NCBI GenBank assembly: GCA_000708835.1
Contig: DF237106.1
Span: 84,370-148,369 of the forward strand
Length of the DNA stretch: 64,000 bases
Direction: 5' to 3'
Source of the DNA: Klebsormidium nitens
Taxonomy: Eukaryota; Plantae; Klebsormidiophyceae
Below the pieces are notes generated by a model. The model was not told the DNA's origin. It searched no databases and worked only from the letters and a program-made list of their open reading frames with translations. Position 1 is the first letter of the stretch. Every line of letters starts with the position of its first letter. Positions 343 through 34,400 of the stretch are shown piece by piece. The position numbers and the translations under genes were made by a program.

Positions 343-3300
343 TCATTCATGCCGGCGCTTCTTCCCACCGTGGCTCCTCCTCTCGTGCTTCTTTCTCTCA
401 TGCTCGCCATCATCGTAATCACGACTCCGGCCTCGTTTCTCCTCGTGCCTCTCGTGCTTATGGTGCTTTTCCGTTCTCGAGGGCCTGCTTGGCCCCTCAA
501 CAATGTCCTCGTTCAATTCCATGGCCGCAACGGACATGACCGCATGTGGCTCGCCCGACTTTCCCTTCTTCCGGGAAGGCTCGAACGCCGGTGGTGGTCC
601 AGTCGACTTTGCGCCAGACCTCTCCATCTGAAAACAAGCACTCTTTATTTAGAATGTTGTCATCAGGTCAAAATGGAGCAAAAAACCATTTCGAAGCAGG
701 AGTTCCTCCTAGGTGCCCTTCCAAAGAGGGAGGTTAAAGCATCGACCTGCACAAACTTGACTGGGTGACACGACAAGAGCTTTCTCTTCGAAGTCATTAG
801 AGAATCCGAGTTACCGAACAAATCTGCTTTTGCCTTCGTCGCTAACAAGAATCTCAGATTTTCTGCAGCCCGTTCGCTCCCGGCTCGCAACAGTTCAACT
901 TGTTTGGCAAGGCGCAGTCCCACCCAAACCAAGCAACCAAAAGGCTCTTGCACACCTCTTATCTTCAAAACACTTGAGAAGAAACAAAGGAATCTCGATT
1001 CACAGAGCATACCCACCTGCTTCTTCAGCAACTGTTCCCGCAGCCTGGTCGCCTCCTCGTCCTTTTCCACCCTCTCCAACCGCCCGGTGATCCCCCCCCG
1101 TTCCGGCACCGGGCTGAAACTCCGCCCCATCCGCTCGCCGTCCGGCCCCCGTCTCCTCAGTTCTGCCGGCGGCTCCTTCCGCCGATGCCGCTCCTCCACC
1201 TCCTCTGACGCCCGGAAATCCCTATACGGCCCGCGCGCGCTTTCCACGACTTCTCTCACGCCCCCCCCCGCCCGTCGTCGTCCGGGAGAAACCGGCCGCG
1301 GTCCTCGTACACCCCCCTGCGGGGCTCATCAACCGAGCCCCTGACCCGGTCGTCGAACCCCCCCCGGCGCGGGAGCTCCTCGGGAAACGCTCTCCGGGGG
1401 TGGTCGTCATCTAGAACCACTCGCCGGGGCGGATCGACCGTCGCTAAGCTTCGGACGACCTGCCGCTGGTCCGACGGATGGGCGTCCAAATCGTGCTTGT
1501 GCCGCTTTCGCTCGCGTTCCGGCTCCTCCCGGTCCTCTTTCGGGGGGCGCTTGCCCCGGTCCTTTCTGCCCCCCTCCTCCGAAGCCCGCCGGTCCGCGGG
1601 CGATGCCGAGAGGCGCTTACGGACGTCCGGCCGCTCCGCAATCTCGCCTTCCTCCCGTGACGCTTTCGACCGCCCGCTTAGACTAATAATCTTGGAACCC
1701 CTCCGCTCTTCCGCCCCGCCGGAGAGTTTCCGTTCGTCCGCACCCAATAACCGCTCCTCCAAACCGGCCTTCCGGTCTACAGACGGCAGTTTCGTCCGTG
1801 CGTCAATCACATCCCGACCGTTGTTGCTCCTCTCAGACACCCGGGTCTCGCCTTTAACCCTCTTTCCCTCTGGTTCATCAACCCTAACCCGCCCCTCCGC
1901 CACCTTGGGCCCCATTTCCGCGGTGGGCGCATCCCGCAGCAGAGCCTTCCTGCTTTCCCGACCTTCAACCTCGTCTCTCACAGGGCCTCTCCGAGGCTCC
2001 GCTTCTTTGGCACGCTTTTCTACATCTCGCGACGTCGCCTTCCCCTCCTTCAGGCTTCCCAACCGCTCCGACACTCCGCTTGTCAGCTTCTCCCCGTGCT
2101 TCCCCTCCGCAGTACCACTGTTCGGTCTTGAACGCGGGGGAAACCCTGGGGGTGTACCAGTGGCCGGCTCCCGCGGTTTTAGCCCGTCCCTTTCACTAAC
2201 CACGTCCCTTAACCCGTCCTTCGAATCGTTCCTGGGGATCCCCCTCGACTCGCCGCTTTCCCTCCCCGATTTCAGTCCTTCTCTCGCCGCGTCTGACCCC
2301 CTGCCAACGTCACCATCCCGACCCCTGCCAACGTCGCTCTCTTTCCCTCGCTCCCGGGTCGCGCTGACGTCACGGCCCCCGTCCTTGTCCTTCTTCACCG
2401 GCGGCAGGGGGGCCGGTCCCCTGGGAATTGTCCGTTCCGGCGCCCCCCTGTCCGGAACGCTCTCCCTCCGGTTGACCGTTGCCAGTAGCTTCCCGAGCGG
2501 AACCTTCTCGCCAGCCGAGGGAGCGCTCTCCCGGTCTTTCCGGGCGGGGCTCTCTCTACGGACGGGGCTCTCTTTTCGGACGTCCGAAACTCGCGGCCGG
2601 TGCTCGTCCTCAAAGTCCGGCTCGTGCTTCCGGTCCGGCGTCGCGCTAATCTCCCCCTCTTCTTGCTCTGTATCGTCCGGCTTCGGCTCGACTTTCGGCT
2701 CCGCTTTCGCCTCTTTGGGCCTCCATTCCTGCCGCTTAGACCGCTTGTCCTCCACCTTCTCCTCCGCTTTCGTTTTCGGCTCGTCCTTCGGCGCAAACGG
2801 CTTGGCGTTCGGGTTGAGCCTCGATCCCGGGGTGCTCGTCTCCTCCCTACCCGGCACAACTCTCGCCGGGCTCCCTTCTCCCCTTTCTAGTTTCTGCTCC
2901 CTTCCCTCAACCGCTTTCGCCTCCTTCGCGACTCCATTCACCGCGGGTTTCGCTTTGACCGCTTGGTCGACAGCTGTCAGATCGCTCGCGCTTTCCCGTT
3001 TGCTCACACCCGATGCCGCAACACCTGCCGTTGCCGCCGGTTTGCCGCTTGGCGGTCTGCTCGGTCCGAGGGGGCTCGCCTTCGGAGGAAGGGAGGCTTG
3101 CTGAGAGCGCCCGGATGCCGGCGTGGATTCGCGTGCGGGCGGCGGGTCCAGTCTCGGGTTGAAGACGTGAGGGGCCACCATTGTATTCTGAAGCAGGCAC
3201 AGGCAGTGTTCAACGCAGCGACAAAAATAGAGAATTCCAGTGAGCAAGGAAAGGCAACAAAGCTGGTCTTCAACGAGAGGGCACACCGTCACTGTCTGGT

Positions 3301-6300
3301 TTTGAAGCAGACGCAGCAAAGGGAGTTTCATGTGGCAGCGACAGACCAGAAACTTCCGGAGAGCAAGCGAAAAATGAGGCTGACCTTTGCATCAACTGAT
3401 GAGCGCAAAAATGCTTCGATATTGATTCCTTCACTGTCCACTTCGGTGCCAAAAGGAATGAAATTTTCTGCCTCGGGGGCTTGATGATAGACCCACAGGA
3501 TTGATTGCATGGCAGAGAACCTGCAGGAACCGTCGTCTGAAAGTGGCCTGGAGGAACGAGGCTGCTCACATGCGCACTTTGCTTAGAGAGACGCCTAAGC
3601 AGCATGCATACTTGGTTATTTGAGAGCCATGCCAAATTGAGTCCAAGCTCACCTGTTTTTGAATCAATATGCCCTTGTAGCTGCGGGCAATAATCAGGAT
3701 GTCTTCCGTCGTTTCCTTTCCATTGATCAATTTCTCCAGCTGGATTCGGAGAAAGCAGAAGATTAGTAAGCATATGAAACATAAGATGACCGGTGTGATC
3801 AGGAAGCATCGAGGAAGCACAGACCGATCAGGGCGATTAAGGAAAGGGACCAGCGCTTGCTTCCATTCACTACTTTGACCCACCCTGATTGAGGGAGAAG
3901 TAGCGAGAACGAATCAATCCAAAGTATCTCTGAGACGCATACCAGGAAAAAGGAGTGGACAGCTGAAATGACAGGCGCGGTAAGCAGGAGACACTACGTC
4001 GAGCACAGTCCAGCAATATCTGACTACGGCTATCGACATGGCCCTCCAGACAATCTCCGGACCCCTTTTGCTGTCTCTTTTCCGGTTAATCCGGAAGACT
4101 CCCGTCCTTGCGAGCTTCCAACCTGGACCCCGGCGGTGTGATTATCATAAGACTCAGTGAGGGCTGAAATAGCATGACTCGACGTCTCGTCGTTGGCCAG
4201 CTGCGAACTGGCAGTAGATGCTTACTTTGAGCTCGAAGATCCTCGCGTGCTTCTTGACGGCCGGGAAGATGTCTTTCAACTGCAGGAGAGATGACATCAG
4301 CCGGCATCAGTGCCCTGTCAGACGTCTTGCCAAACCTCTAGAATCTAGCGGAAAGGGTCTGGTGAGCATTAATAGTCGCTTGCAAAGCTGCCACATCTCG
4401 CTGACGTCCACTGACACCCTAGGCCGAAACATATCCTCGACGGTGGACGGAGATTGCTAGCAAGATGGCTATCAATCAGACCTGGCACGATTGCACCCTA
4501 TTGGATTGGTGCAGCCGCAACGATAACAAGGATGGGGAAAGAAAGAAGCAGCATAATGACGTCACAAGAGGATCTACTAGGTCTTCTGCTGCTGATGTGG
4601 ATTTGTATTGTTGAAGGACCGTCCTTCTTCTTTCAGGGACGATACGACTGTGCATCACGAAACCGGACGGCGTGCTAGCAGAGCTGCTGGGCAGTCACAA
4701 GATGGCTTTCTTGATCTTGATTTTGTGGATGGAAGTGGGGCACCAGAAGAGGCGCCTTACCTTACCAAGATGTCCAAATGAATCAACTCGGAAAGGTAAC
4801 AGTCCCAATATTGTGATGGTGAAAATATCAGCTCACCTCCTTAAGCACAACCAAACTGTTCCTGATGCGCATTGGGTCCTTCGAGTCCAGGTGCCTTCCA
4901 ATGATCCGTGTGATCCACTGGTGCCATCTCCACGTTTGCTGTACGGAGAGGAAGACGATGAATACGTCAGCAGTTGCTTCCAGTGATTACTTTTGGTGCC
5001 AATAAATTCCTAATGATTGTGACCTTCTACTTTAGCGGTCAAAAGTCCGCAACCAGATTTGACGCCGGTTCTCGAGCGAATGGATCTTGGCTCGCTTTGC
5101 ATTCCATTACGACGTTAGGGACGAACTATCAACGCCGTAACATAAGGCCACCGTGCATGACTCGCAAAGGACTGCTTTCGCAGACTTCACAAACGACGGC
5201 CCGACTAGACTTTTCAATCAGCGCAGCGTCGACTTAGTATTGCACTGCACTTGAGAGATTGACATAGACCAGATCAAATGTAAGACCATCTGAAAGCCCC
5301 GATTGCTCAAGATGAGTATGCATGTCCAGTGCCCACTCCAAAACCCCATGCCAAGTGAGAGCATGAGCTTTCACTGAGAAAAATGAAAGGCATACTTCTT
5401 GGTAGTCGAGGAACTTTGACGCCTTCTCCTTTCCCGTCAAGCGCGAGTGCGGCTCCCGGGCGCACTCCCGCTGGAAGGTCTCCTCATCAGCCTACAGAAC
5501 GCCATCGCAAATGTGTGAAACGAGGCCACATTGAAACCTTTTTTTGTGTGAAAAGTATCCAAGACGTACTTACATCCTCCAGATTTGCAAACGTACAAGT
5601 TTGAGGTTCTCAGCGCTGTCCAAAACCAGGTGGCAACGAAAGGAGCGCATCGAACGACAGACGCTCGTGAGACGCTTTCCTTGCCTTTTCGTGCGCACGC
5701 AAATCAGAACACCAGTAGCGTACGAGTCAAGCAAGTTATAGCGGCTCGTCCTACGATACAAGTACACAAGGTGCAGAGAAGCCCTTTCTACTCAGTAGTA
5801 TCGATTTTATATTGAATTACGGCTACGTTGACTTACATCATGCCCGGGTTTGACTTAGATTATGCCCGGGTGACGGGTCGGGTTGGTTTGGGGGTTTAAG
5901 GTGGGTACGGGTGCGGAGCATGTGAACTTTGAGTTCAGGTTTTAGTTTGTTTGTGCCCCGGGAACTGGTCTAACTCAACATAGACCTATACCTAAGTCAA
6001 TTTAACCTCAAGACTTATCTTCTACTCCTCACCTTCCAGTGCTGCAGCAACTTGAGCAACTTGCCCAAGAACTTGCCGTACCGCAGGGCCTCGTACTCCG
6101 AGGAGAGGGCGACCAATGGTTCCAGCGTTTTCACGAGCACAAATGTGATGACCTGCAAACTTGGAACCAAATCAGACCTGCTAACCCAACAACTTTGAAA
6201 CGTTCAAGGGAACAAGTCGGGGTCTTCAAGGATCGAGCCGAGACTATCAGAGGTATACCAGACATGATGTAGAACAATCTTCAAGAGCTGATTCCAAGAT

Positions 6301-9300
6301 AGGCTACTCAAGAGCGTGGATCCAAACATTTTAGCGATCAGAGACTGAATCGGAGAGTAAAGAACGCATTCGCAGCAGCTCTTTTATCTTGTTTGCAATA
6401 ACCCAGAAGATTCGAGGGGGTTGTGGCAATTCCGGTCTTACTTGCATAGTGGGAAGGCCAGGGGCGTTGATCTCGTGTAGGAGGTTCAGGAACTGCAAAA
6501 AAAAATAACATTCGTCAGGGAGCAGCGGTTGGATCCTTGTTCCAACTTGTCGGCATTACACGGAGGGCGGGAAACAGCCGCAGTTATTGCACGACTCCGC
6601 TCGCAGCATTTGAACTTTCAGTGTTTCGCAGCCTCTTGCGTATGAAAGCTTTCCTTGTGACGCGGCATTGACAAAACAGTTCCAAAAACGAAAAATCTCG
6701 TATGATTAGTTTTAAGCGATTCTTTTAAGCGATCAAGAGGTGGGTCCGGTGCTCACATGGAAGCAGAAGAGCGCGTCTGGCAGGGAGAGCGTCACGCGTG
6801 GAAAGATGCACGTCTGCACAAGAGCACCTGGTTAATTTACGGAGGACGGACTGTGCTTAAAAGGGTTTCATTATTGAATAATCACCTCGTTGGGTCTGCA
6901 GTATAGTGTTTTGAGAGACTTCACGGTTGAGCTTATTTCATTTGAAACAAAAGGCTGTTCTTTTGGGTGATCCCAGATCCGTGACAAGAGCGCTGATTAT
7001 GCCACTGATTTTACATAACGTACGAGTTCACGATGAGTTCTGATACAACATGTAACCCAGTCAGAATGCCTACAACGTGTGGGTCAGCTTAGAATTGAAC
7101 CAAGTACGAACGAGCTGACATTGCAGACAGGTGCTCTACTTTGCAACAGCAGCCATCACGCAACTGGTTATAGAGGAAACATCGCGCAGCCGCTTCAAAA
7201 CAAAGTAAAACTACCAAATATCCGACACTGATTGCCGACAAAAGCAATCAGGAGCCTGTTTTGAATACAACCTCAACGAACGAAACCCGCAGCAATACAC
7301 TTTCACGCCAAGGGGGTCTGCCGTACCTGGAAAAAATCAGAGATTGCGGTGCGCTTCTCTGGAGGGTCGTCGGTTGGCCGCCCGTCAGCGGCGCGATCGC
7401 CACAGGCCTGATCGCTGAGTACGCGCTCGGTTGACGCACGGTCCCCAGCCTTCTTGTGGCGAATCTGCCACTGGTCCTTCTCCCGGATCTGCAGGTTGCA
7501 AAAGCTAGGCTTTGTACAAGAAAAGCCGACTTTGTGAATCTTAGAAGCAGAAGCGACTGGTGACACGAATGCACCGAAGAAGGGCTTTGGACGTCTGTTT
7601 GCAGCAGAAGCGAACAACGAGGAGAGATAGGTAGCAGCTGAAGCCTTCGTTGAGGAGACCGAGCATCCCATTGCTTGGGAGGATAAGTTTCTTCGGTAGT
7701 TCCTTGTCCGACCGAAGAAAGCCATCATGGCTTGCAATAAATTGCGTAGGATCCTTTCGAGGGATGTCTTAGTCGTGAGCACGTGAATCTTACCAGAATC
7801 TGCTTGACAGCCTCGACAGTCTTCTCCTGCGCTGCTAGCTCGTTCTCCAAGTTTGTGACCGTATCCTGGACAGAGCAATCGCAGGCAGCGTTAGCAGGAG
7901 AAAGCAGCCTGCGAGTGCTCCAGCAGAGAGATGCACGGGAACTTCAAATTCCAAGTTCACTAGGAAGATCTTACGACAATTGCCTTCAACAGAACACTAA
8001 GCGCCCAGAAAAACACAAAATGTGGAGAAGCAATCACCAAATACTTCACTGAGCAAACGTGAAAATGGAAGGCAAAGTTCGCCCACCCTTTACACAAAAC
8101 ATAGACTGACGAAGCGTCCGACATTCCACAAATCGAAGGAAGAAACGCCACTACAACGTTGAAAACACGTGGAGTAACAACGGCAAATGTATCGCACAGT
8201 TGAGAACTCGGCCTCACAAAGCGCCCGCAGAGCTAGAGTTAGCGAACCAGACGCGAGTGATCTGAAGAGGGCTGATGGGGCCCGGAAACGAAGCGGTATC
8301 GACAACGGCAACGGACACGGAAACGGAAACGGAACGAAGCCAAAGCTAGCCCACCCTCAGAAACTTGGCCTCGCGGTCCCGCTTCTTCTGGTCCGACCCC
8401 GTCAGCGACTCCGCCTCCTTGGCCGCGTCTTTGGCCGCCTTCTGAACCTTTTCGATCTCGGACAGGTAGCGCGCTTTCGGGACGTAGATGTCGGAGAGGG
8501 ACAGGCTCCAGAAGCGCAGGTACAGGAGGGGGCTCATGATGTGCCACGTGGCAGGGGCGTGGAACGACTGGACCGTCCCCAGCAAGCTCTTCCACCTGAG
8601 AAGGTTCTAGAACGAATTAACAAAAGAGTTACCTTTTTGATTTTGAAATCGAAAATGACTGCTTTTGTGGGCAAAATTTTCAGTTAGACCTCGGCCATTT
8701 GTAAAACCGCAGATTCAAGAAAGCAAGGGTGCTGTTGCGTTGCAGAAGGGGAGCGGTTTTTACTCGAATCTACTCGAATCTACTATGCTTTAAGCAAATT
8801 GTTGGCAGTGAAATGAAAGAAAGTAAGCGCAGCCTGGCGAGGGGAATGTCGTGCTCTAGTGCTGACTGCCGCGAACGAGATTATATCAGATAAAGCGGTG
8901 ACTTTGGTCAGAAGGCGTCTCGTACAACTTCCTGGTTCTGCAAATTGATCAAGGCAATAAGACCTGAAAATAACTGTAGGATGAAAGCAAGCTTCTGAAA
9001 CTCACGTTTCTTGTCGTCTGTCAAGAGGATAGATCCAAGGAGCCTTCCAGAATTTGAATTGACTTTGGGGAGCTCAAATTTGGTGGTCGGCAGCACGAGA
9101 ACGAGCCAGAGACGAGGCAACTTGACGACACGGAGTCATTATCCGGAGGCTCTGCGGGGGAGAACACACTCACGAACAAGAGAATTCAACATTCGTGAGA
9201 AGCGAGGAGGAGCAGGCTCTACGTACGTGAGCGTGACGTCGCCCAGCTTTACTGCTAGCTGGTTGTCGTCAGCGGGTTCGGTCGTCCAGTCAGTGACTGC

Positions 9301-21935: not shown

Positions 21936-24900
21936 ATGGCCCATAACTCTGATTTAGGGTTGACTGAGGGTTTTCCTGGGTCTCAAGATGGCACTGAAGT
22001 CTCTCTTCAGCAACAGGACTGGTATGAGGCTTGGAATGCAGAGCCAGGCTTTGAGAGCAGAAAAGCTGCACCCGAGATCACACCAGAGCAGGCAAATGGG
22101 AATGCGAGGACCTTCTTAGTGACTGAGGAGGGCCAAGTAGAGGGTGCTGATAGACATGTCCGTTTGAAAGAGGCAGGACCCGACTTACATCCGCCAGAGG
22201 AAGGACTTCGCGCTGACGAGGAAGAAGTGGACGAAAGCGTGCAAGAGGAAGTGATCAAGGACAAGTACTGGATGCAGGCTCCTCAGGACGAGGTGAGAAG
22301 CTGTCTCAACCTCCAAATTGTCTATTGTTATTTATGGCCAGCAGAATAGATAAGATTGTCAACAGGCTGCTCGAGAGTTATGAAATAAGGAATCGGGTAG
22401 TACATGTTCAACGGAGCTCATTGAGAACATGAGTTGCACAAAGGGGCTCGCGACTTCTTTCACGCCAAGTTAGCACACATGTGTTCCTCACCTCTCCCAG
22501 TGCTAGAAAAGAAGGAATGTTGACTATCCATGGTGACCATTCAATCAACGGAGTTGCACGCAGTAGACAAAAAACCATAGGTCTTTCTGAGGATAATGCA
22601 AATCCTTCAAACGTGCGAGGACAAGAAGTGAGAAAGCGAGTGCATGTTTGTTGTGTTCAAAATGAGATTGGCCTTTGAACCGGGCTCCACAGGATGATGA
22701 GAGCTCTGCTTATCCCTCAAGGCGTGCTTTCTGGACTGGATCAGCGTACTTTTTCAGCGAGACTGTCCTTCGAACATTCACCAGGTCTTTTCAGGGGGTA
22801 TAACCATTCGGCTTTTCGTCTCGCTCAGGATTTTGCTTCCTTTCGTATTGCAGGATGAGAGCGCGCGCGCGCCCACGCCCGTCGACCTCGGCTTCCCGTT
22901 CCCTCCGTCCCTTAAGCTCGACCTTGTGCGTATCCTCACCCGCGCCAAAGCCGCGACCGACCACGCCATGCTCATCAAAACAGGGAGCTTCAGTCACGAA
23001 GGCCTTGCTTCTCAGACCGCACCTCTAGAACCTGCTTTGCGGGGCAGTGCCCCGACCACTGCAGGGCCTCCAGCGCAGAGAAACGGGAGGAAGAAAAGGA
23101 ACACCAAGAAGGAAAGGGGTCAGAAAATACCAGTTAACGAAACCAAACGGAAACGGGCAGGGGAAGGAGTCGAGAAGAACGGCCGGAGAGGTCGTCGGTT
23201 CCCTGTAGTAACTTGTAAGCCTGGAGTAAAACCCAAAACAATGGTGCTGCCACCTGAGATGCCATCAGACCGGGCTTTCCAGAACGGATCGGGTCACTTT
23301 GCCACCGTCGATCCGTCCTGGGAGCTCTACAGACGCCAACCAGTTCGCGCCGAGTTTCCCCGCAGCACACCGGACCTTCCGGTGCTGTCCTTGGGCGGAA
23401 TGTTGGAAGACGCAGCGGGAGCGGAACGGGCCTACACCGCCTTAGACGACATCTTCAAGGAAGCAGAGCTGCGAGAGCTTGTCGAGCAGGTGACCGGAGG
23501 AGGGAACCGGGGACAAGGGAGACCGAGGGGTTTGTCTGAGGGGTTTGGAGTCTCGCGCGAGGGGTTTGGTGTCTCGCGTGGGTCCTTTTCGGCGGAGATA
23601 CGGGCCGCGCAAGCAGGCGAAGGATTCACGGAGGAGTTTCCTTCAAGCGAGACGCCGGGTTCGGGAGAAGACACTGTGGAAAACGTTGCCGCGGGCGCGC
23701 TAGAAATGGCACCGCGCGCGGTTCGCGACTTCGTTACTCAGGTAACAATCGACTCCGGGCAACAGATTGTGAGGCCAACCCTTCAGGATGTACTTTCTTC
23801 GTGTCCTTTCTCCTCTGCTATTAAGGAGGTGCTTTACAGCTTCGGATACGTATTGACGGGACTGAATCTATCTTCACCTGAGTGCGATTGCTTTATCTTC
23901 GTGCGCAATAGACAGTTATGGAGTCGTCGACCGCACTTCTTGCAAGCATTCCCCGATTATATGCATCTGTACGGGTTTCTGAAACCTCTGGAGGATGAAG
24001 CCATCGAACACTTAGAAGGGCTCGAAGCGGCCAGATGGAGACTGAACATGTCTACCTTCACAAACAGCCGCCATAAAACGGCCCCTGTTTTTTATGTTCG
24101 CATCGTTGAACTTCTGAGTGTGCTGTGGCCGCCTGAGAGCAAGCGTCTTGATGTTTCTTACTTGCAGGCCCTGTATGGACAGCACAGTCAGCCCGAGGAA
24201 GAAGACCTTGATGCCACACCTTCTACGGTAAGTCAACCAGTTGCCACGAGACGTTTTGGTAAGCTTTTGTTCCCAATATTCTTCTGGTACATTCCTCTTG
24301 TGCATATGCATCGTCTTCAATGCTTCTCTGAAGCTTCTCTGCCGTTTGAGTGCCGCTTCTCTGCGCTCCGCCGACGATTCAAGAAGCTAAAAGTCATTCC
24401 ACTGGCAGTATATTACGCTTATCTGAACGCTGACCTGAAAAGTAGGAGAGTGCAAGTGAAGCCGCTCGAATTTATTCTTCTGTTTCGTGTCTCATCAGCG
24501 GCCGGTACTCGAAGGAGCACCGTCGGCAGCCGAAGCTCCCCAAGGAGCCCCAGTACACTTTCCCCCGAAGAGCTCTCCTCGGCAACCAATAGCCACATCC
24601 GAAGCTGCTGATGCGTCGCCCAGAACCGCAGTCGCACCTCAGAGGCCCACCTCTGAGCGCGCGCATCGGGGCGCGGGGATAGATGGCGGCGCAGAGTCAA
24701 TGGATCCGGTTCAGGAGATGCACCTACGTATGCCACGTGACTTCTTGTCACTGGCTAACGATGTCTACGCGATGGAGAGGAGGGGCTCATCCACCTTCCC
24801 TAGCACGCGCCTCGCGCGCGCGCCACAACACGCCCTCATAACCCCACAGCCCGTCCACTTCTCAGAGTGGTTCCCAGAAAACCCGCAGCCATTTCGCCCC

Positions 24901-27900
24901 GAGCACTACCAAAACCTTCAAACCCCACGGGCGGCCTTCCAGCCGCCGCGGCAGAAGCTTCAGCCGCGTCGGGCGGCGAATCGCCAAGCCCCAAACCTTT
25001 ACGAAGAAGCGCCCAACTTCATCCGCAGACAGGCGAGAGCGGGCCCAGATGCGGACGACGGCTTTGAGAACCAGTTCGGCGCGTCCGTTGCGTACGCGCA
25101 AGAAGAAGACCGGTTCTACGGTCAAGAAGCAATCGTCGCAGCGGCGCGCGCGCGCGCCCTCGAACGGCACGCTCGCAATTGGGCCCTGTGGTACGATCCC
25201 GAAACAGACCGTCCAACGGGCCGCCAGAACGGATCTCGAACGAGCCCGGCAGGGAGGACCGCGGCGACGGAATGGGACGCGCGCGGGGGCGGACAGTCGC
25301 CGGGAGTGAGGGGGCCGCGCGCCTCTAGACCTGGCAGTCGCGGTATTTTTGCAGAGGACGATGTGCACATGAACGACAGGCTGCAGGAGGAGCAGTTTCG
25401 GGCAGCCGAGACAAATCAAAGTAAGTTTACTGCAAATTTAACCAAAGCACATTTCAGAAAGCGGGCAGAAGTAGTGGAGGGCGTAAATTGTTTTCCTTTG
25501 ACTTCCATAGAGCAAGAAATGGAGAGCTATACATCTGACTGATTGTGGGCGTTCGAAGGAGCTAGCTAGCTCGCTTGGTTCTTTTAGAGATATGCAGATT
25601 TCACGTGCCCTTTTGTGCACATTCCTCCGCATTAGTTCCCTTTTCCCTGCACCTGATTTATGTTATGGTCGAGTGGTGTGGCGGTTCTTTAATGTTTACT
25701 AAGAGCCTTCCGGCGCAAGGTAAAGGGCGATCTTTGCTATCGAACCGACAAGTTTCCATAGTTCCAACCTTATTACCTCAACGTCTCACGAGCGGCCAGA
25801 ACTAGACTTCTCTTTATTCTCAGTGTTTTATCGATTCGAGAGAATGATACTCGACTTCAACACGCTCTCGGCGAGTTGTTTACCTACCAGCAATTCTGTT
25901 AGGAGTCCCTCATCCTGTGCAGGGTGTCCCGTCGAGCGTTTTTCCGACCCTGCCTACGTCAGCAGAACAGCGACCACCGCGGAAGCGCTCCTCGGGCTCA
26001 GCCTCGACCTCCTCACGGAAGAAGGGCGGCCGCACGCGGCCGCGGCCGCGCTTAGCTTCGACCCCTACCAAACCCCGGGAAGTTACCCAAACTCAGGCGG
26101 CGCGGGAGGGGCGCAGGGGTTTGGAGGAGAGAGTCGGGGTTTGGAGGTTTGGCAAACGCGGCATGGGCTCGCGCCCGCATTCCAGTCCTTAGGCGGCGCG
26201 GCCGCGGACCGCGGCCTAGGGCGGCTTGAGATCGCGTTTTCGGAAGAGGCAAACGAGCGCGCGCGCGCTGTGCCGTGGTACCCGGGCGCCGCCGGCGAAG
26301 CGCTCGGCGGTCGGCCACGCGAGGAAGGCATGGTCCGCAGGGTGCAGAGAGTGGTCACACCGGTCCCAAACCCATTCCCACCACGGCAGGGGCCAATCAG
26401 GCCCACACCGAGCGTATTCACACCCGGTCGAGGCAACCAAACCCGCCCCCTTTCTCCGGAGTCCGAGTGGAGCCGAGGCGCCTTTCCATTGGATCTTCAG
26501 GGCGCATTAGCGGCCGCGGCCAGGTGGCTGCCCGAGGGCGCATTCCCACCGGAGCGCTTGGGAGGGACCTGGACTTCCACGCCGACGGTGTTAACACCCG
26601 CGGAAAGCTGGGCCGGGGGTTGGCTTAATCAGGAGGAGAGCGCATTCTCACCGGTCGTGAGCCAAGAGGGCAGCCACGAGTACGTGGGCTGGGGCCCTGG
26701 CCAACCGTGGGATGCCACGTGGCAAGCGCAGGTTAACGAGGGCCCCGTTTCGGAGGAAGACGAGCCGTTGATTTTGCGGTGCCGCTCGACTGATACTGGA
26801 TCGAAGCGGAAGCGGGACGCGCCTGCACATGAGAGGAGGACACGTGGCCGGCAGGGGAGCACGGGGGCATCCAAGCGGCGCGAAAGTAAAGAGAGAGATA
26901 AGCAGCAGGTTGAATGCGGGCACAATCAGCAAGAAGCAAGCAAGGGGGCGAAGAAAAAGCGGGAAAGAAAGGGGGGGGGCAGACAAGCAGTATCGTCGAA
27001 GAGGGGACGAACGGGCGCAGAATTTGGAAGCGCCGACGAGCCGCCGCTCGCGGACGGCGGCGCGCGCGACACAGAGAGCGCGCAGGGTTTGGAGGCTTTG
27101 CTCCAGTCAGAGGGGCCGTCCTTTCTTCCGCCGGACTTTCTGACAGACTTGGACGGCCTGGATGCAAATCTGGAGGTGAGACTGGGGCGAGTGATAATGG
27201 CGACTCCGGAAGTCGGATTGAATCTGCCCGTTGAAGAGGGGCGGCCGGAGAATGCGAGAGCGGCGGGGGGTGTGAAAAGGCGCAAGGCACCGAGGGGAGA
27301 ACATTCGGCGCAGGATACAAGGGGGTCCAGTCGGCAGAGAGAAACTAGGGGCGGGGATGGGAGGGCATTGGCGCCGGTAAGCTGTTTGCTTTGAAATCTT
27401 TGCTCTGCTCGTACTTCCACAACGATGAAAACAAATGATGCGCTTTGCTCATAGTTCCCGATTGTAGCAACTTTGTACGTCGGCATAGCATTGGGTTGAA
27501 ACTCTTCAATGCAAATGCTCTCGCACATCGGTGAAAGCCCGACCGCGCATACATGGCGCCCATTCCTTCTTCTCAAACCCGGAAACTTGAGTACCGCTTG
27601 ATTAAGATTGGCTCACGATGGCACTTTTGCGGCTTTGAATCATTCCCAAGTGTCTGAATTCCGGTGCTGCATTTCAAAGAGGACCGACTGGCCCTCCGTC
27701 GGTTTCTTGTTGTGGTGCTACGAGAGGAATTTTGCGGGCATAGCTTTAATTGCTATCTCATGGCAACATACCACATAGGCACTACACACCCAGACGTGCG
27801 GATCGTCTCTCTGGTTGTCAGTTCGACACCGGGACCCACGGAGCAATGAGCCATGCTTCAGATCTTATTGTAATAGATGATAAAGCGGTGAATAGCCTTG

Positions 27901-29910
27901 TCGCTACTTGTTTTAGAAGGATACATTCTTTCAGATCCTCTACCGCTTCGGCCAATGGTCGAAAAGGTCAACGGCCCAAATATCGCCACGTGTCCTTGTT
28001 GCAGGGGGTCTTAGCCGTACTGAACGCTTGGTTCCACGATCACTTCAAGAACCCGTACCCCACCGACGAGGAGAAAGCAGAGCTGGCCGCGCAATGCAAC
28101 CTCCAGGTCAAACAGGTGAGCACTGGTTGCTGACGGAAGCAGCTGACATAAGGAAGCGCCAACCAATCTCTATTCTTGAGAAGTTTGGCTGCCGCGCAAG
28201 TTCGAGGACCGCACCTTCTGAACCGAAGAAGAGCAGCTACAGCAAACCGCCTGCGCATGTTCAGGCAGTTGCGCGTTCGCAAAATGTCTCGCAACAAAGC
28301 GTCACCATCTCCGCTGTCTCTGCTTCCGGAGGGGTAGGGGAGTTGTTATGCGGACCTGTAAGGAAGAGTCTACCCTTGTTGCAGATCAACAACTGGTTCG
28401 GCAACAAGCGGATGCGCCTCAAGCGCACCATCATGCAGACGCTCGAGACGCGAGTCCCCCCCGGCGCTTCCGTTTCCGCGGCGGAACACCGTTCCGGCGC
28501 GCCCCCAACCCTGCCCCGTCCGACCCCACTGCCGACCCCGACCCCGGAACGCGGTGCGCAAAGTCCGCCGGCGGAAGCGCTAGAGCTTTCTCGCGTCAGA
28601 AGGGGAAGCGGGTCGCGGTCTTCTGGGAAGCGGACGAGGTGGGACGGCGACCGAAGTCCCATTAGACATGCGCTTCGGTCGCCGGAAAGCGGAGGTGATC
28701 CCGCGGCGTACAGCATGTTTGAGGCGCTGCTCGAGTCGGTACGGCTAGGGGATCTCGCGCAGGGGCGCCCGCAGGAGGCGCCGGAGGCGGTAGAGGGGCT
28801 GCACGACCCAACTGAGGCGCGGACCCCGACCGGTGACGAAGAACACTGGGCAGCAGCGGAGCGTTCTGGTCATGTTTCGGGTGTTTTCCGGCGGAATCTG
28901 ACAGCGGAAGCAGTGGCCATGAGAGACGCCGAGACGGAAACGGCGTGGGGTGGCTTCTCAGAAGCGGTTCCGGCGCTAGAGGAAGAAATGGAGACGGAAG
29001 CGGAACGGCGGGCTGAGGCGGACGGTGCGGTCGAGGTTCCGCCGCTGGACTGTCAGGACGGAGTTCCGTCTCAGGAGCGGAACGAAACGCTGCAGCGGAT
29101 GCAGTCTCAGAAGGAGGCGATGGAGCGAGCATACGAAAGCTGCTTTGGGGCCGCATCTGGCGGCTTGGAAGTTTCTGTGGTTGACGCTCCAACGTCCGAA
29201 GGTAAGGCGGAGAGACTGTAAGATGAGCGAGGCAACTTTGATCCAATGGCAATGCAGTTGCAATGAGCGTATGTTGTCATTATTGTGGCACAAGAGTTCA
29301 CGACAGCCAGTAATAACGTTGTAAGAGACAATCTCTGCTACTGAAGAGCAGCACATCTATTTGGACGAGAAGGTTTTCAAAGCATCTTTTGTGACCAAGT
29401 CAGCGGACGTTTGCTAAACACGACGGCCGCGACGCAATGCGAGCGAATCCGTGTTCGAGGAAACTCACACACGTCGGGTCGGAGGATTTTCCAGAAGCAA
29501 CCCGGGAGCTAACCCAAGAAATACGTCGAAACTCTGCAGCACCTGGGGCTTCCGCCGCTCCGCCTCCGCAATGTGATCCTCCGCTCGCCGCGGAAACGGA
29601 CACGCAAGAAGACCGTAACGAAGAGGCGGGCCCACAACATTCCACGAGCCCGGAACCTGGTGACACGTGGCACGAGGCCCCGCCAGGCGACGCCAGAGTT
29701 GCTGAGCCGGAAAGCGGCGCTGAGCCGAGGACACCAGAAGGCAGCGCGGGCTGTCCGCCAGAGGCGGAAGGAGCTATGGTGTCAAGAGAATCCCCGCAGA
29801 CAACGAGAAGTGCTCAAACCCCAGAAGAGCAGGGCATTACTGAAGCGAACGTGGCAACGCCTGCAGCGGAGAGAACGGTTTTCGAGTCCCTAGAGTCCTT
29901 CTTCCAGTAG
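21936..29910 (+). CDS. Large TALE-class homeobox transcription factor, non-KNOX, PBX-like (about 1760-1816 aa)
   Basis: Phase-consistent exons 21936-22292, 22854-24227, 24499-25420, 25923-27376, 28005-28115, 28385-29201, 29495-29910. Spliced homeodomain: GRALAP|GVLAVLNAWFHDHFKNPYPTDEEKAELAAQCNLQVKQ|INNWFGNKRMRLKR, with the TALE PYP loop. The homeodomain is certain; joining all upstream exons into one gene is inferred from the splice phases. Confidence 0.88.
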
Positions 29911-31436
29911 AAGGGCGGTGTCTTAGAGTTTTGCTTGGCATTCAGACAGACGTAGAGAAGGTGATTCCTGTAGGAGAAGGATGTTCTGTGTAACGCTAGT
30001 GTGATTCTGGAGCAAAGATTGGACTGATCTTAGAGCACTACCAGCAGGCTCAATTTCAAGTTGCGGTCTTAGGCTGACCGGAGGACAATCAGAAATTAGT
30101 CACGTGCACCAGGCAGCGCGAGCGGCGCAGACACGGCAGCACACGCCAGTGATTGAATGTAGGGCTCGTAGGTCAGCGTGCTAGGGCTTTCGGGCTTTGG
30201 GGCTTTCGGGTATGCAAACCACTGACAGTAAATCAGTCTGGTGGAACTACTGTACGTACTTGTATGCTTGCGTTGCCAGCGCGCAGCAGCGGCGGATGCG
30301 TCCATGTGCCCAGCGTAAAGTAAAACATGCGCCGACTCTTTTGATAGCGCAGGGGGCGCTAACGTGCATTAAATGACTCAAGATGCTCAATCTGCATCAA
30401 TCATGTATTAGTATCTGTATCATAAAGTTGCACCGGGCATATATTTCTGTATCGTGCAGGCTTGTCGTCGCTGCCTCCGGCCGCGCGGCTGCTGACTCCG
30501 GATGTACGTGAGCATTTGGTGAATTTTGAATGCAGACGCGCTCAGCTTCGATCGTTGATCGTATTCTTGAATACGGCAGCGGAACTTAATGCGAACCGTC
30601 TTAAGCACGTGGCATAAATGTGCATGTGTGGGATATCAGCATATATGCCATAATGCGCAGGACTCTGATCGATGACTCGGCTGGCCGCAAATCTACGGCC
30701 GGTCTGCAATGTAGTCAATGGGTTCGGCTGTAAGGTACGACGTACACATGCTGCTCAAGATTTACACCATATAGGCGCGCCTGGCCCGTCCTTTGGCGAA
30801 TTCGTGCAAAGTCATTTGATTTGTGAGTACGTTCCTTGCGTCCGACATTAAACGTCGTGGTATGTTGCTAACTCCTCCGCACAGCCGGCGCATGGGGCCA
30901 TACGGCTGCGACAGTGCCACATGATTATGAATGGCTCTTTTCAATACAAGCGCCGATCAATCGGACTCTACATGCTATCCATTCGAAAAGCAGCCTCAGT
31001 TCGTATCCAGCCAGAGCCTCTCGAGGATCGGAGGCTGGTCGGTCAATCGCGCTGGCCGCGGGCGACCTGGCCCAGCCGCCGCCAAGGTTTCAAGTCTACA
31101 TTCAATAAATTACGAACTTCCATGATAGTGTGATCTCCTCGTAAGCTAGTGGCCACCGGCTTGCAACATTCGTACATATGCAAACAAGCCACAATCAGCA
31201 ATCTGAGACACGGCAATGTTGACCCATCCAATTGACCCTGTGCTTCGACTCAGTGAATCTGCAGTAGCTAGCGGTGAACCTTGAGCGGTAGACCTTCAAA
31301 TTTAGCCATGCGCAGAAAGCTCGGATGAGCACAGCGCCCTTTCCAAAATGACGCTACCTACCTTGGACAAATAGGTTCAACATTGCCCGATCGCTACAGA
31401 GGCTGCTGCAGACAGTCTCCCCTTGGAACAAAAAGT

Positions 31437-34400
31437 TCACTTTTGAGCGACCAGAACGCCCATGAGCCCATTTGCAATCTCATAGTGGGTAGCCTTCTTG
31501 AAGCCCGCCACCTTCGCCATGCGAATCTGCTCCCGACCTGCACAGATCCAGCCGAAATGAACGCTATTAGCATTCTTGAAGAGGGCCCCAAGATCTTGCA
31601 ACTGTATTTCGTTCAGTATGCCGTTGTCGATGCGCCTCCGTTCAGTGGCGGCCGACCATTTTCGGTCTTTCAAAACGAGTGGATTCCTAACGGAGAAGCC
31701 AGACTGAGGATAAGGGGAGCAGATCTTAGAGAGCCGGTGACCTTATAACAATCTCGCTACACCACTGCCGTATTGGGAGTGCCACTTTGAGGTGTCAATA
31801 TCCTGCCAGCAAACACTCGGTTTGGAATGTAGTCTTACATTCAAGTGGAAAATGCTGCGTTCGAACACGGATACACAGACACACGCATGTTTCACCCTTA
31901 TGCGCAAACATTCAGACTGGAACGCGTACTGAAACCCAGACTGACTTTGCGGCATTCGAACACGGAAAACTTCAAACACAAACGTTTCATCTTAATGCGC
32001 AACGTTCGGACTGGAACGCGCCACTACTCAGATCGATATTGCTGCAATCACACACGAAACATTACAAACACAGATTTTTTACCCTATTGCACAGTCGTAC
32101 CTCTTGGGAAGCGCTCAATGCTAGGTCGGAGGTACTCGTACTGCTCCTCCACCTGGAACTGGCGGGCGACCGGGACCACCACGTTATCCAATAACCAGCC
32201 CTGGTTGAGGAGGGTAAAAGAGGGGGGTTAAGGAGGTGGTTGAGATAAGCACGGGCTGGCGGCGCAAATGGACGTGTCGAAAGGTGAGGCTCCCAATGGG
32301 CGAGTGCCCCCGAGCAATCTACTCTAAGTGACTGACACTTCTGCTCTAAGTGAAAACCGATTGGACACTGAACTCCAACGCGAAGCCCCACCTCGACTAC
32401 AGATAAGCGTAGCATGGTCACATCTGCGCCCCGGGAAAAACTCAGTAGTTGCCCTCTTCGATTCCACGGTACCGGGAATGCCTTCCCGGTCACATCTGCC
32501 ATGTCTCGGAAGTTCGGTACCGAGGACAGGAACACTTTTCGTTTCCGTGACATCCGAGTGATGAGTTGCCAGCCTGCTTCAAGAGGTCAGCTTCGTACGG
32601 CTTCGTTGGCAATGCTTCACAAACATTCAAGCAAACGCAAGCTTCAGGTATCGGTGGTGGTAACATGAAGCTTTCCGCTAAAACGGAATCCTTGAGCAGA
32701 TTTGGAATTTCGAGCTTGCTTTTCGTTAAAAAGGTTGATTTATGCTAGGCCAGTCCCAGAACAATCCACTCGAACTGGGCTGATAAGCAAGGCGTGAACT
32801 TAGGTTGAGCTGATACAATCGGCTAAAAGTGATTCTTTGAGATCTGAGAAAAGGTAACTGATTTTAGAACAAGAAGCGGCCAGAGACAGACTTTAAGTTT
32901 TGCAAAAACGCGAGGCCTGAAAGAGCTGCAGAAAGGTGTAAGAGAAGAATCTCAAAGCGAAGTCGTTGGAAAAAGGAGCGTCAGGATCGCTCACCTGAAG
33001 CTCACCAATTACTGTACCACTAGCGTTGTTGAAGTCTAGAATGGCGACACTTGCGCCTGCACAGAGGAACATAAACGAGTACGTCCGTCAGTGCTTTCTT
33101 GCTTTGCTTAAACGAGGGGGGCGCATCAGCCACAAAACATCGATCTACCTATTGCATACGCTCCAGCCAACTTGCCAAGCAAAAGAGGTCTATCTCTCGC
33201 TTCAAACTTGCTTGGATAATTTCTGTCTTTTAATTTTCAGGAGCAACAGGAGATGCCTTTTAAGGCCAAGACAAGCCTTTGAGGTTGTTCGATATTCAGC
33301 GACTGGTTTAGGTTGTTGGCAAAGAGTTGAGCAGGAAAAACGCCGAAGTCCGTCAAGGAGACCTTCGAAGGACGAAGCCACCTCCGTCAGAGTCTAGTAA
33401 GTAATAATCTGGGAGACTAAGCCTTTTTCTAGGGCAGGGATCAAGTTCGCCATGAGAGAGGGCGATTGCTGCACGAAGCGCTGCATTGACGCGGCCTCTA
33501 CCATTAAAAATCCCAACTTACATTCCTTTCTGCGAGAAACTTTTCGAAGATCACGGCGACGGCTTCAGGAAAAGGTGACAGCTTCTTATGAGGTTCATCT
33601 GAAGGGGAAGTCAAACCTCTTACCTGGTTTTAAGACACGGTGGATCTCCCGCAGGCTGCGGGGGATGTCAGTAACGTTCCGGAGGCCGTACCCCATCGTA
33701 GCTGCGTCGAAGGCATTCGAATCGAACGGCAGTGAGAGGGCGTCGCCTTCAATCCACCTGGACAGGGGGCCGCTTATTTAGTCAAGACTTTGGTCTTATT
33801 CGGATCCAAGCCGTCCTTGGTTATCTTGTCAAAGACTAAGAGGGCGTCACCTTCATCCACCTGGACAGGGGAGCGCTTATCAAGTCACGGCCACCGCTTC
33901 TTGTTGGAAATTCGTCGTCCTCATTTGGCTTCTCTGGTCTGACATTTGGGCGCTCGAAAGGTTTGGCTTGTTGAGCCAACTTCGGCGGTCGCAGAGTGAA
34001 AAGTTGGACAGCGTCTTAAATGCCTCAATGTTCCGCGAGCTCCTAACCCGAAGCGTCATACTGTATATATACGATTACAATCATGCATGAAAAAGGCGAC
34101 GTCCTCGAAGAGAGAAAACTGTGCGAAAATGAGCCCCATAAGTTCGAATTCTGAGTATCGATCGGGTAGTCTGGAATCCAGCGTGGCAATACGAGCCAAG
34201 TCAACCGCTCGAGCAAGGGATGCTGGCGGATGCAAGCTGGCGGATGAGAAGCCAGAACGCTTCAGCGCAAAGGAGCTCACTTCATTCTGAGTTTCGACGC
34301 GGTATACGAAGCATCTTGCCTCGCTGCCGCCACCCCCAACTGCTCCGACGAGAAGTCGAGGCCAGTGACCTGTGGATAGAGGTTTTTTTGGTGTTCGGCT

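Follow-up and report, generated by a model that had tools for sequence, protein, structure and literature searches.

A transcribed TALE homeodomain gene of Klebsormidium nitens with a PBX-type recognition helix and a probable affinity to red-algal KNOX-Red2

Introduction

The streptophyte alga Klebsormidium nitens (formerly K. flaccidum) carries a TALE homeodomain gene, kfl00157_0150, at 21936..29910 on the forward strand of the stretch analysed here, the 64,000 nucleotides of contig DF237106.1 (assembly GCA_000708835.1) from position 84,370 to position 148,369, which we call the window. RNA shows the gene to be transcribed and spliced; it is under selective constraint, and the homeodomain it encodes has PBX-type contact residues, among them glycine at homeodomain position 50 (G50). 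We regard the protein as probably a KNOX-Red2-affine G50 TALE factor that would recognise a PBX-like, TGAT-type core and act as one half of a TALE-TALE heterodimer.

In eukaryotes only distantly related to one another, TALE heterodimers (KNOX/BELL, MEIS/PBX) turn on the diploid programme once gametes have fused, and Klebsormidium stands near the base of the lineage leading to land plants. PBX proteins have G50 and a TGAT half-site; MEIS, KNOX and BELL proteins have isoleucine at the same position (I50) and TGAC. At stake in a green G50 protein is whether G50 TALEs are an old, third functional type of the green lineage, and with it how the specificity of the dyad was rewired.

The gene is part of a published survey (Joo et al., 2018; BMC Biol 16:136; PMC6219170), which lists six TALE genes for the sequenced strain under its older name, K. 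flaccidum, and gives this one as Klefl00157_0150_KNOX-Red2, with tree support of 89/89/0.97 for its KNOX-Red2 affinity and a position outside BELL. Table S2 of the survey assigns it a domain “KN-A (1058-1091)” and homeodomain introns at 10/11 and 44/45; the underlying match to the KN-A hidden Markov model (HMM) has an E value of 0.00047 in a small database, and no PBL domain is reported. The non-KNOX (PBX-Red/GLX) role is given there to three other Klebsormidium genes, which bear PBL domains; KNOX1 is kfl00113_0180 and KNOX2 kfl00118_0070. The Figure 2 legend sets KNOX-Red2 with the PBC proteins of Amorphea through a “shared WFGN motif”, ascribed to convergent evolution, and Note S2 proposes kfl00157_0150 and kfl00021_0250 (PBX-Red) as horizontal transfers from a red alga. 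Later literature repeats the definition of the KNOX-Red2 class with no new data on kfl00157_0150, and a literature search with the gene identifier finds no paper beyond this survey (Joo et al., 2018). The feature, its WFGN oddity and the name of its class are already in print, and a sequence-only reading of this DNA had allowed that such a class might be known; a PBX-like helix in this alga being a known finding, reporting it adds little in itself. What is added here is an RNA-supported gene model, homologues on two further contigs (L001 and L004) with G50 and both homeodomain introns, family-specific conserved blocks, evidence against the KN-A and KN-C2 calls for this gene, and arguments against a recent red-algal origin.

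Gene structure and transcripts

The locus is identified as kfl00157_0150 by seven peptides of Table S2 (Joo et al., 2018), whose exact matches in the window begin at the start codon, 21936. The eight-exon model gives 1659 residues, the annotated length, with one terminal stop and none internal:

21936..29910 (+): complete gene kfl00157_0150; eight exons, 1659 codons and a stop
21936-22292, 22854-23741, 24168-24227, 24499-25420 (+): exons 1-4, gene model
25923-27376, 28005-28115, 28385-29201, 29540-29910 (+): exons 5-8, gene model
29202..29539 (+): last intron; a run X2 RNA contig stops at 29201 and has 97 loose letters that resume at 29540

The contigs that fall on the locus come from four runs, and since several of them are spliced at GT..AG sites they represent RNA. 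They confirm five of the seven introns, at junctions 23741|24168, 24227|24499, 25420|25923, 28115|28385 and 29201|29540, at low contig depth. The fourth of these junctions matters most. A 330-nt contig of run X4 joins 28021-28112 to 28382-28619, and the alternative cut 28115|28385, three places further right, fits just as well. That cut is the very Q|I junction, before helix 3, at which the sequence-only reading had put an intron, so that helix 3 as first read is what the mRNA encodes. The last junction corrects the 3' end of the gene: because the run X2 contig passes from 29201 straight to 29540, the stop codon at 29221, where the open reading frame ends, falls within the last intron, an eighth exon is present, and the protein continues to 29910.

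Two small discrepancies appear between contigs and window. A run X4 contig (depth 2.7) differs by C>T at 25315 and by a 1-nt deletion at 25346 that, if real, would shift the frame of exon 4; both differences are probably assembly errors or strain differences. In a run X2 contig, 17 loose letters ahead of 28971 equal 29006-29022 in exon 7; the region 28971-29022 may contain a small local repeat, or the contig an artefact of assembly.

The exons are 63% GC and the introns 48% GC, and with its 1659-residue architecture the gene looks native. Most of the protein is predicted to lack order, and it has a single TALE homeodomain near residue 1250; for exon 5, AlphaFold2 run on a two-row alignment returned disorder, with a mean predicted local distance difference test (pLDDT) score of 37.

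The homeodomain and its recognition helix

The homeodomain is interrupted by two introns, and the strings and coordinates that had been quoted for it are present in the window where they were placed:

27347..28432 (+): TALE homeodomain, residues 1218-1280, 63 residues, two introns; Pfam Homeobox_KN 4.3e-21
27377..28004 (+): intron at homeodomain 10/11, phase 0, GT..AG, 628 nt; read from sequence
28005-28115 (+): exon 6, GVLAVLNAWFHDHFKNPYPTDEEKAELAAQCNLQVKQ, 111 nt; an RNA contig covers 28021-28112
28116..28384 (+): intron at homeodomain 44/45, phase 0, GT..AG, 269 nt, starting GTGAGC; spliced RNA contig
28385..28435 (+): recognition helix INNWFGNKRMRLKRTIM, with N47, G50, N51, K52, R53, M54 and R55

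Exon 5 ends ...GGDGRALAP at 27376 and is followed by GTAAGC from 27377; the acceptor of this 10/11 intron, TTGTTGCAG, ends at 28004. The junction (27376|28005) lies outside the RNA contig cover; its support is that the unspliced frame runs into a stop at 27394 and that L001 and L004 have an intron at this position too. Exon 6 encodes the last part of helix 1, then the TALE loop of three residues (F-K-N, followed by PYP) and helix 2, and exon 7 opens at 28385 with INNWFGNKRMRLKR..., the stretch INNWFGNKRMRLKRTIMQ... following the acceptor that ends at 28384. The spliced homeodomain thus reads ...GRALAP|GVLAVLNAWFHDHFKNPYPTDEEKAELAAQCNLQVKQ|INNWFGNKRMRLKR. Both introns are kept in L001 and L004, and the 44/45 position is also found in HsPBX1.

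Membership in the TALE superclass is plain. The Homeobox_KN match covers the full 40-position model (Homeodomain itself scores 1.9e-13), and HDHFKNPYP aligns residue by residue with YSHLSNPYP of PBX, with three extra residues between positions 23 and 24 and then PYP. With the numbering anchored on W48 at residue 1268, the core residues W48, F49, N51 and R53 are all present (NNWFGNKR) and are carried by the spliced RNA contig. The base-contact set is N47, G50, N51, M54 and R55, against N47, G50, N51, I54 and R55 in PBX/Exd and I50 in KNOX, BELL and MEIS, so that the hallmark of the PBC class, G50 in WFGNKR, is present. Among all solved structures searched, Exd/PBX1 score 62-63 bits (E about 1e-16), PKNOX1 51, MEIS 45-46 and TGIF 38-40. 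A green-lineage TALE homeodomain with G50 and a PBX-type helix 3, as the sequence-only reading had it, is therefore borne out; the BELL-like look that it saw in the N-terminal arm is a likeness generic to TALE proteins.

A search with the spliced homeodomain by phmmer against 1.84 billion representatives, re-ranked by single-domain BLAST, places the nearest homeodomains by identity among proteins P0142 (61%), P0130 and P0153 (58%), P0144, P0009 and P0125 (51-55%) and the PBX-like P0023 (50%), together with a heterolobosean group around P0123 of Pharyngomonas and P0162 of Willaertia. The exact K. nitens protein did not come up among the representatives, and no green-lineage homeodomain closer than the Klebsormidium-type contigs was found in them. 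P0142 and P0153 (58-61% homeodomain identity) are metagenome proteins that combine the homeodomain most similar to that of Klebsormidium with a significant Pfam PBC domain (3.4e-25 and 3.6e-22). The Heterolobosea (Pharyngomonas, Willaertia) and their relatives (P0123, P0159-P0168) form a tight TALE group with helix 3 NNWFGNKRMRYKRKM. Since G50 TALEs are present in Heterolobosea and in PBC-domain metagenome proteins, they are spread more widely than Metazoa and red algae. Two further homologue searches gave little: that with the homeodomain region of P0123 returned only 12 heterolobosean-type matches and no labelled set of PBX, KNOX or BELL proteins, and that with P0125 was swamped by low-complexity words and gained one new protein.

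Homologues and conserved blocks

Two contigs carry homologues of the gene. The 10.3-kb contig L001 (SRR23617307), probably from another Klebsormidium-like species, aligns collinearly with the window through the gene and into the DNA downstream, at about 78% DNA identity and 89% homeodomain identity; the orthologue occupies L001:2-4908, and the collinearity past the gene is that of window 31262-32685 with L001 6279-7327. The 89-kb Joint Genome Institute metagenome contig L004 (3300060284, Ga0590114_0001467) has at 1358-9005 a deeply diverged counterpart of the entire gene, with about 70% identity in the homeodomain (42/60) and 34-41% in the long flanks; by tblastx, the flanks of L004 show no synteny with the window. 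WFGN is kept in both, the recognition helix of L001 being identical to that of kfl00157_0150 and that of L004 reading WFGNRR.

Codon-level comparison with L001 gives a ratio of nonsynonymous to synonymous substitution (dN/dS) of 0.36 overall, with five constrained blocks of which the homeodomain, at 0.15, is one; the segment directly after it is nearly neutral (0.90). The other four are:

26396..26815 (+): Trp-rich block, residues 901-1040; dN/dS 0.16, kept in L004
27026..27220 (+): constrained block upstream of the homeodomain, residues 1111-1175; dN/dS 0.12, partly kept in L004, short predicted helices
28598..28762 (+): constrained block, residues 1336-1390, motif [MV]FExLLExxRL; dN/dS 0.09
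29063..29200 (+): constrained block, residues 1491-1536, with QSQKEAMERAYESCFG; dN/dS 0.06

The Trp-rich block (GGTWTSTPTVLTPAESWAGGWLNQEE...PGQPWDATWQ...EDEPLILR) is the best-conserved part outside the homeodomain; it has no Pfam match, no usable atlas match and no fold predicted by AlphaFold2, and is a candidate interaction module. The motif [MV]FExLLExxRL is kept in L004 and in P0174, and QSQKEAMERAYESCFG is near-identical in L004, P0172 and P0174; in the same block, near the C-terminus, the string QSQKEAMERAYESCFGxxSGG hardly varies among four family members (dN/dS 0.06). The family motifs as a whole, AEALLGLS..LL, GGTWxSTPTVLxPAESWxGxWL ... PGQPxDATW ... EDEPL, [MV]FExLLExxRL and QSQKEAMERAYESCFG, are without a match in Pfam or the atlas.

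Elsewhere in the window, long open reading frames at 55670-60544 (+) contain Cadherin-like (1.2e-08) and bacterial Ig-like Big_12 (2e-08) domains.

A probable affinity to KNOX-Red2

Trees of 59-62 homeodomains over 71 columns (IQ-TREE, LG+C20) were built with four short anchors taken from Table S2 (PMC6219170) and excluded BELL, GSP1 and MEIS reference homeodomains. In these trees the Klebsormidium pair is sister, at 97/87, to P0125, P0144 and P0154, which bear the KN-C2 motif. When the KNOX-Red2 anchors of Chondrus and Cyanidioschyzon are included, a seven-member clade is recovered at 85/86 in which the red-algal types stand together with Klebsormidium outside them, and this clade stays, at 76/67, after column 50 and the residues past position 60 are removed. 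The homeodomain therefore falls beside KNOX-Red2 with moderate support, as a sister and not nested within it, and a grouping with PBC is not recovered in the best trees. An approximately unbiased (AU) test rejects sisterhood with Klebsormidium KNOX2 (Klefl00118_0070), which is 21 log-likelihood units worse (p 0.004). The G50 groups all fall in one weakly supported assemblage (62/79), apart from the I50/V50 half of the tree. The homeodomain phylogeny that the sequence-only reading had proposed as a check thus sets the gene apart from KNOX2 and beside red-algal KNOX-Red2, and leaves a PBC grouping unrejected; the published placement is reproduced with independent sequences, and 60 residues cannot separate “KNOX-Red2” from “PBC”.

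The KN-C2 motif was taken as VL[AS]PxxKWxAxV, from Chondrus, P0125, P0144 and P0009. The string VLAPxxKWRAxV follows the homeodomain in P0125, P0170, P0144 and P0009 and is identified as KN-C2 because the Chondrus KNOX-Red2 shows the same motif (VLSPKAKWNAVVV). To judge from this motif and from their clustering with the Chondrus and Cyanidioschyzon anchors, P0125, P0144 and P0009 are presumably red-algal. A genomic KNOX-Red2-like sequence, L003:1-1062 (GCA_016292395.1), has KN-A-like and KN-B-like regions, an uninterrupted homeodomain and KN-C2 in one frame, with a single in-frame stop between KN-A and KN-B that could be a short intron or an error.

The other TALE classes fit less well. Across all exons, Pfam at E up to 10 finds nothing but the homeodomain: no KNOX1, KNOX2, ELK, PBC, POX or Meis_PKNOX_N. 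Plant KNOX is contradicted by this result and by G50 in place of I50, and BELL by the lack of a POX match (SKY plus BELL; PF07526) and by a helix 3 that reads WFGNKRMR against WFINARVR. The PBC-A/PBC-B domain (Pfam PF03792) is not found N-terminal to the homeodomain; exon 5 against a two-row PBC alignment gave an hhalign probability of 0.1%, a comparison of low power, and exons 1-4 were covered by Pfam only. The PBL domain of PBX-Red/GLX was sought through Pfam PBC and one PBC alignment, and neither gave a match. All these negative domain tests are low in power, the hhalign profiles being very shallow (effective number of sequences 1.2-1.5), and absence is not provable from them.

Several observations weigh against placing the gene with KNOX-Red2 and against the role we propose. 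Adding L004 lowers the KNOX-Red2 link to 60/84, while the three Klebsormidium-type genes group together at 97/96. A clade that unites Klebsormidium with the PBC-domain and heterolobosean proteins is only 1.5 log-likelihood units worse in the AU test and is not rejected (p 0.335). KNOX1, KNOX2 and ELK are among the domains unmatched in Pfam, and exon 5 against the KN-A/KN-B region of P0125/P0170 reaches an hhalign probability of 0.1%. The basic stretch that Joo et al. (2018) labelled KN-A can be located exactly, by the extraction string of their Data S2 (PMC6219170):

26867..26968 (+): basic stretch labelled KN-A by Joo et al., residues 1058-1091

This stretch lies in a block (residues 1041-1110) with a dN/dS of 0.42; about 20 residues of the stretch are deleted in L004, and it is more likely a linker or a segment of nuclear-localisation type. 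Alignment by MAFFT finds no counterpart of the KN-C2 core (VLAPxxKWRAxV) in kfl00157_0150; hhalign pairs GKRTRWD with APRTKWR at an E value of 0.39, and KRTRW, a string inside the 1336-1390 block, is not kept in L004 or P0174. Furthermore, the N-terminal arm of the homeodomain has unusually few basic residues (G5, R6), the proposed DNA specificity and dimerisation are inferred, and the RNA support consists of contigs from a single study. The KN-A and KN-C2 calls for kfl00157_0150 do not hold up, the published KNOX-side evidence for it is weak, and its assignment to the KNOX side comes down to the 60-residue tree.

On the KNOX-Red2-affine reading, kfl00157_0150 would be a sequence-specific transcription factor for which, by analogy of PBX with MEIS, KNOX and BELL, a TGAT-type core is favoured over the TGAC of I50 TALEs. 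Like other TALEs it would form half of a TALE-TALE heterodimer, as its family and the two-hybrid results for Picocystis suggest. Because the Picocystis KNOX-Red2 binds PBL-domain TALEs in yeast two-hybrid (Note S2, PMC6219170), the likeliest partner would be a PBL-bearing Klebsormidium TALE, kfl00021_0250, kfl00010_0090 or kfl00159_0100. Its nearest described kin by the homeodomain tree would be red-algal KNOX-Red2, and the conserved Trp-rich block offers a candidate contact surface.

Alternative explanations

The sequence-only reading had proposed the opposite side of the dyad: that the protein is the non-KNOX (PBX-side) partner of the Klebsormidium KNOX and that its G50 helix is a vertically inherited, ancestral PBC-type state. 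Much of the homeodomain evidence can be read this way. The top pairwise homeodomain identities are with true PBC-domain proteins, P0142 and P0153; Exd/PBX1 are the best solved matches; the clade with PBC-domain and heterolobosean G50 proteins is unrejected in the AU test; and the G50 homeodomains of Metazoa, Heterolobosea, red algae and Klebsormidium still form a weak group when column 50 is left out. KN-A and KN-B are undetectable, and the 44/45 intron is common to HsPBX1 and Klebsormidium GLX, the Klebsormidium KNOX1/2 genes having 27/28; this position, however, is ancestral to homeoboxes generally and hence not diagnostic. No PBC or PBL domain was found by the Pfam and hhalign searches given above, the best trees place the gene with KNOX-Red2 and not with PBC, and Klebsormidium already has three PBL-bearing non-KNOX TALEs. 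The proposal conflicts with the published class, and Joo et al. (2018; PMC6219170) ascribe WFGN to convergence, against the retained ancestral state that the reading had supposed; it stands unrefuted in the trees, is less likely than the published KNOX-Red2 placement, and we hold it to be unlikely.

A second proposal concerns origin: that the gene was acquired horizontally from a red alga, along with a PBX-Red partner (Note S2, Joo et al., PMC6219170). In its favour are the patchy occurrence in Viridiplantae, with only Picocystis and Klebsormidium in the 2018 survey, the closeness of the homeodomain to red-algal KNOX-Red2, and the failure of the search of representatives to find a closer green-lineage homeodomain beyond the Klebsormidium-type contigs. 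Against it, the Klebsormidium-type clade is sister to the sampled KNOX-Red2 and not nested in it, and the two phase-0 introns sit at old homeobox positions and are kept in three diverged genomes, whereas the KNOX-Red2 genes are intronless in Table S2 (PMC6219170) and the homeodomain of L003 is uninterrupted. The family is only 34-41% identical outside the homeodomain, which argues for long residence; the 1659-residue architecture and the GC content of exons and introns look native; and the flanking domains of KNOX-Red2 did not come along. Recent transfer fits poorly, ancient transfer or vertical descent with many losses is possible, and the proposal as published seems to us improbable.

A more speculative reading, to which we give somewhat little credence, takes the gene as neither KNOX nor a red-algal import: a vertical, streptophyte-algal branch of an ancient, eukaryote-wide PBC-type lineage marked by G50 and the 44/45 intron and represented in Metazoa, Heterolobosea, red algae and protists. 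The Klebsormidium branch would have exchanged the MEINOX/PBC dimerisation domain for its own conserved Trp-rich module. If it were true, G50 would be ancestral rather than convergent, and a third TALE type would have been lost in land plants.

That the locus is decaying or mis-annotated and the homeodomain not made is hardly credible, for although the protein is very long, of low complexity and predicted to be disordered (the mean pLDDT of 37) and its RNA contig depth is low, the 1659-codon frame is intact, the junction at helix 3 is present in spliced transcripts, the homeodomain (dN/dS 0.15) and four other blocks (0.06-0.16) are constrained, and the gene is conserved in L001 and L004.

Comparison with known TALE systems

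KNOX-Red2 (Chondrus Chocr_c1794, Cyanidioschyzon CMH049C, Picocystis Picsa_0325) shares with kfl00157_0150 the G50-type helix 3 (NNWFGN.RMR.KR) and the lack of an ELK domain, and the homeodomains are sister in trees. The Klebsormidium protein differs in having no detectable KN-A/KN-B and no conserved KN-C2 core, in the two introns of its homeodomain (the red-algal KNOX-Red2 has none), and in its length of 1659 residues, against roughly 300-700, with blocks of its own (Trp-rich, QSQKEAMERAYESCFG).

The animal PBC proteins (PBX1-4, Extradenticle, CEH-20) and the protist PBC-domain TALEs (P0142, P0153) share with it WFGNKR with G50, the loop NPYP, a hydrophobic residue 54, the basic extension of helix 3 (R-x-KR), the 44/45 intron and 50-61% homeodomain identity. 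In contrast to them, kfl00157_0150 is without PBC-A/PBC-B, and its N-terminal arm is without the RRKRR cluster.

The heterolobosean WFGNKRMRYKRKM TALEs (Pharyngomonas P0123, Willaertia P0162) have nearly the same helix 3 and extension (INNWFGNKRMR.KR) and the loop region PYPTDEEK; they differ in their size of 230-490 residues and their basic N-terminal arm, and in the tree they group with the PBC-domain proteins (93/91) as a clade apart. For Naegleria Naegr_78561, Joo et al. (PMC6219170) give a PBL domain.

Plant KNOX1/KNOX2 and BELL, represented in Chlamydomonas by GSM1/GSP1, belong to the same TALE superclass and share with kfl00157_0150 the presumed role of one partner in a heterodimer by which the diploid programme is started; they differ from it in I50 (WFINQRKR, WFINARVR) and in their KNOX1/KNOX2/ELK or POX domains.

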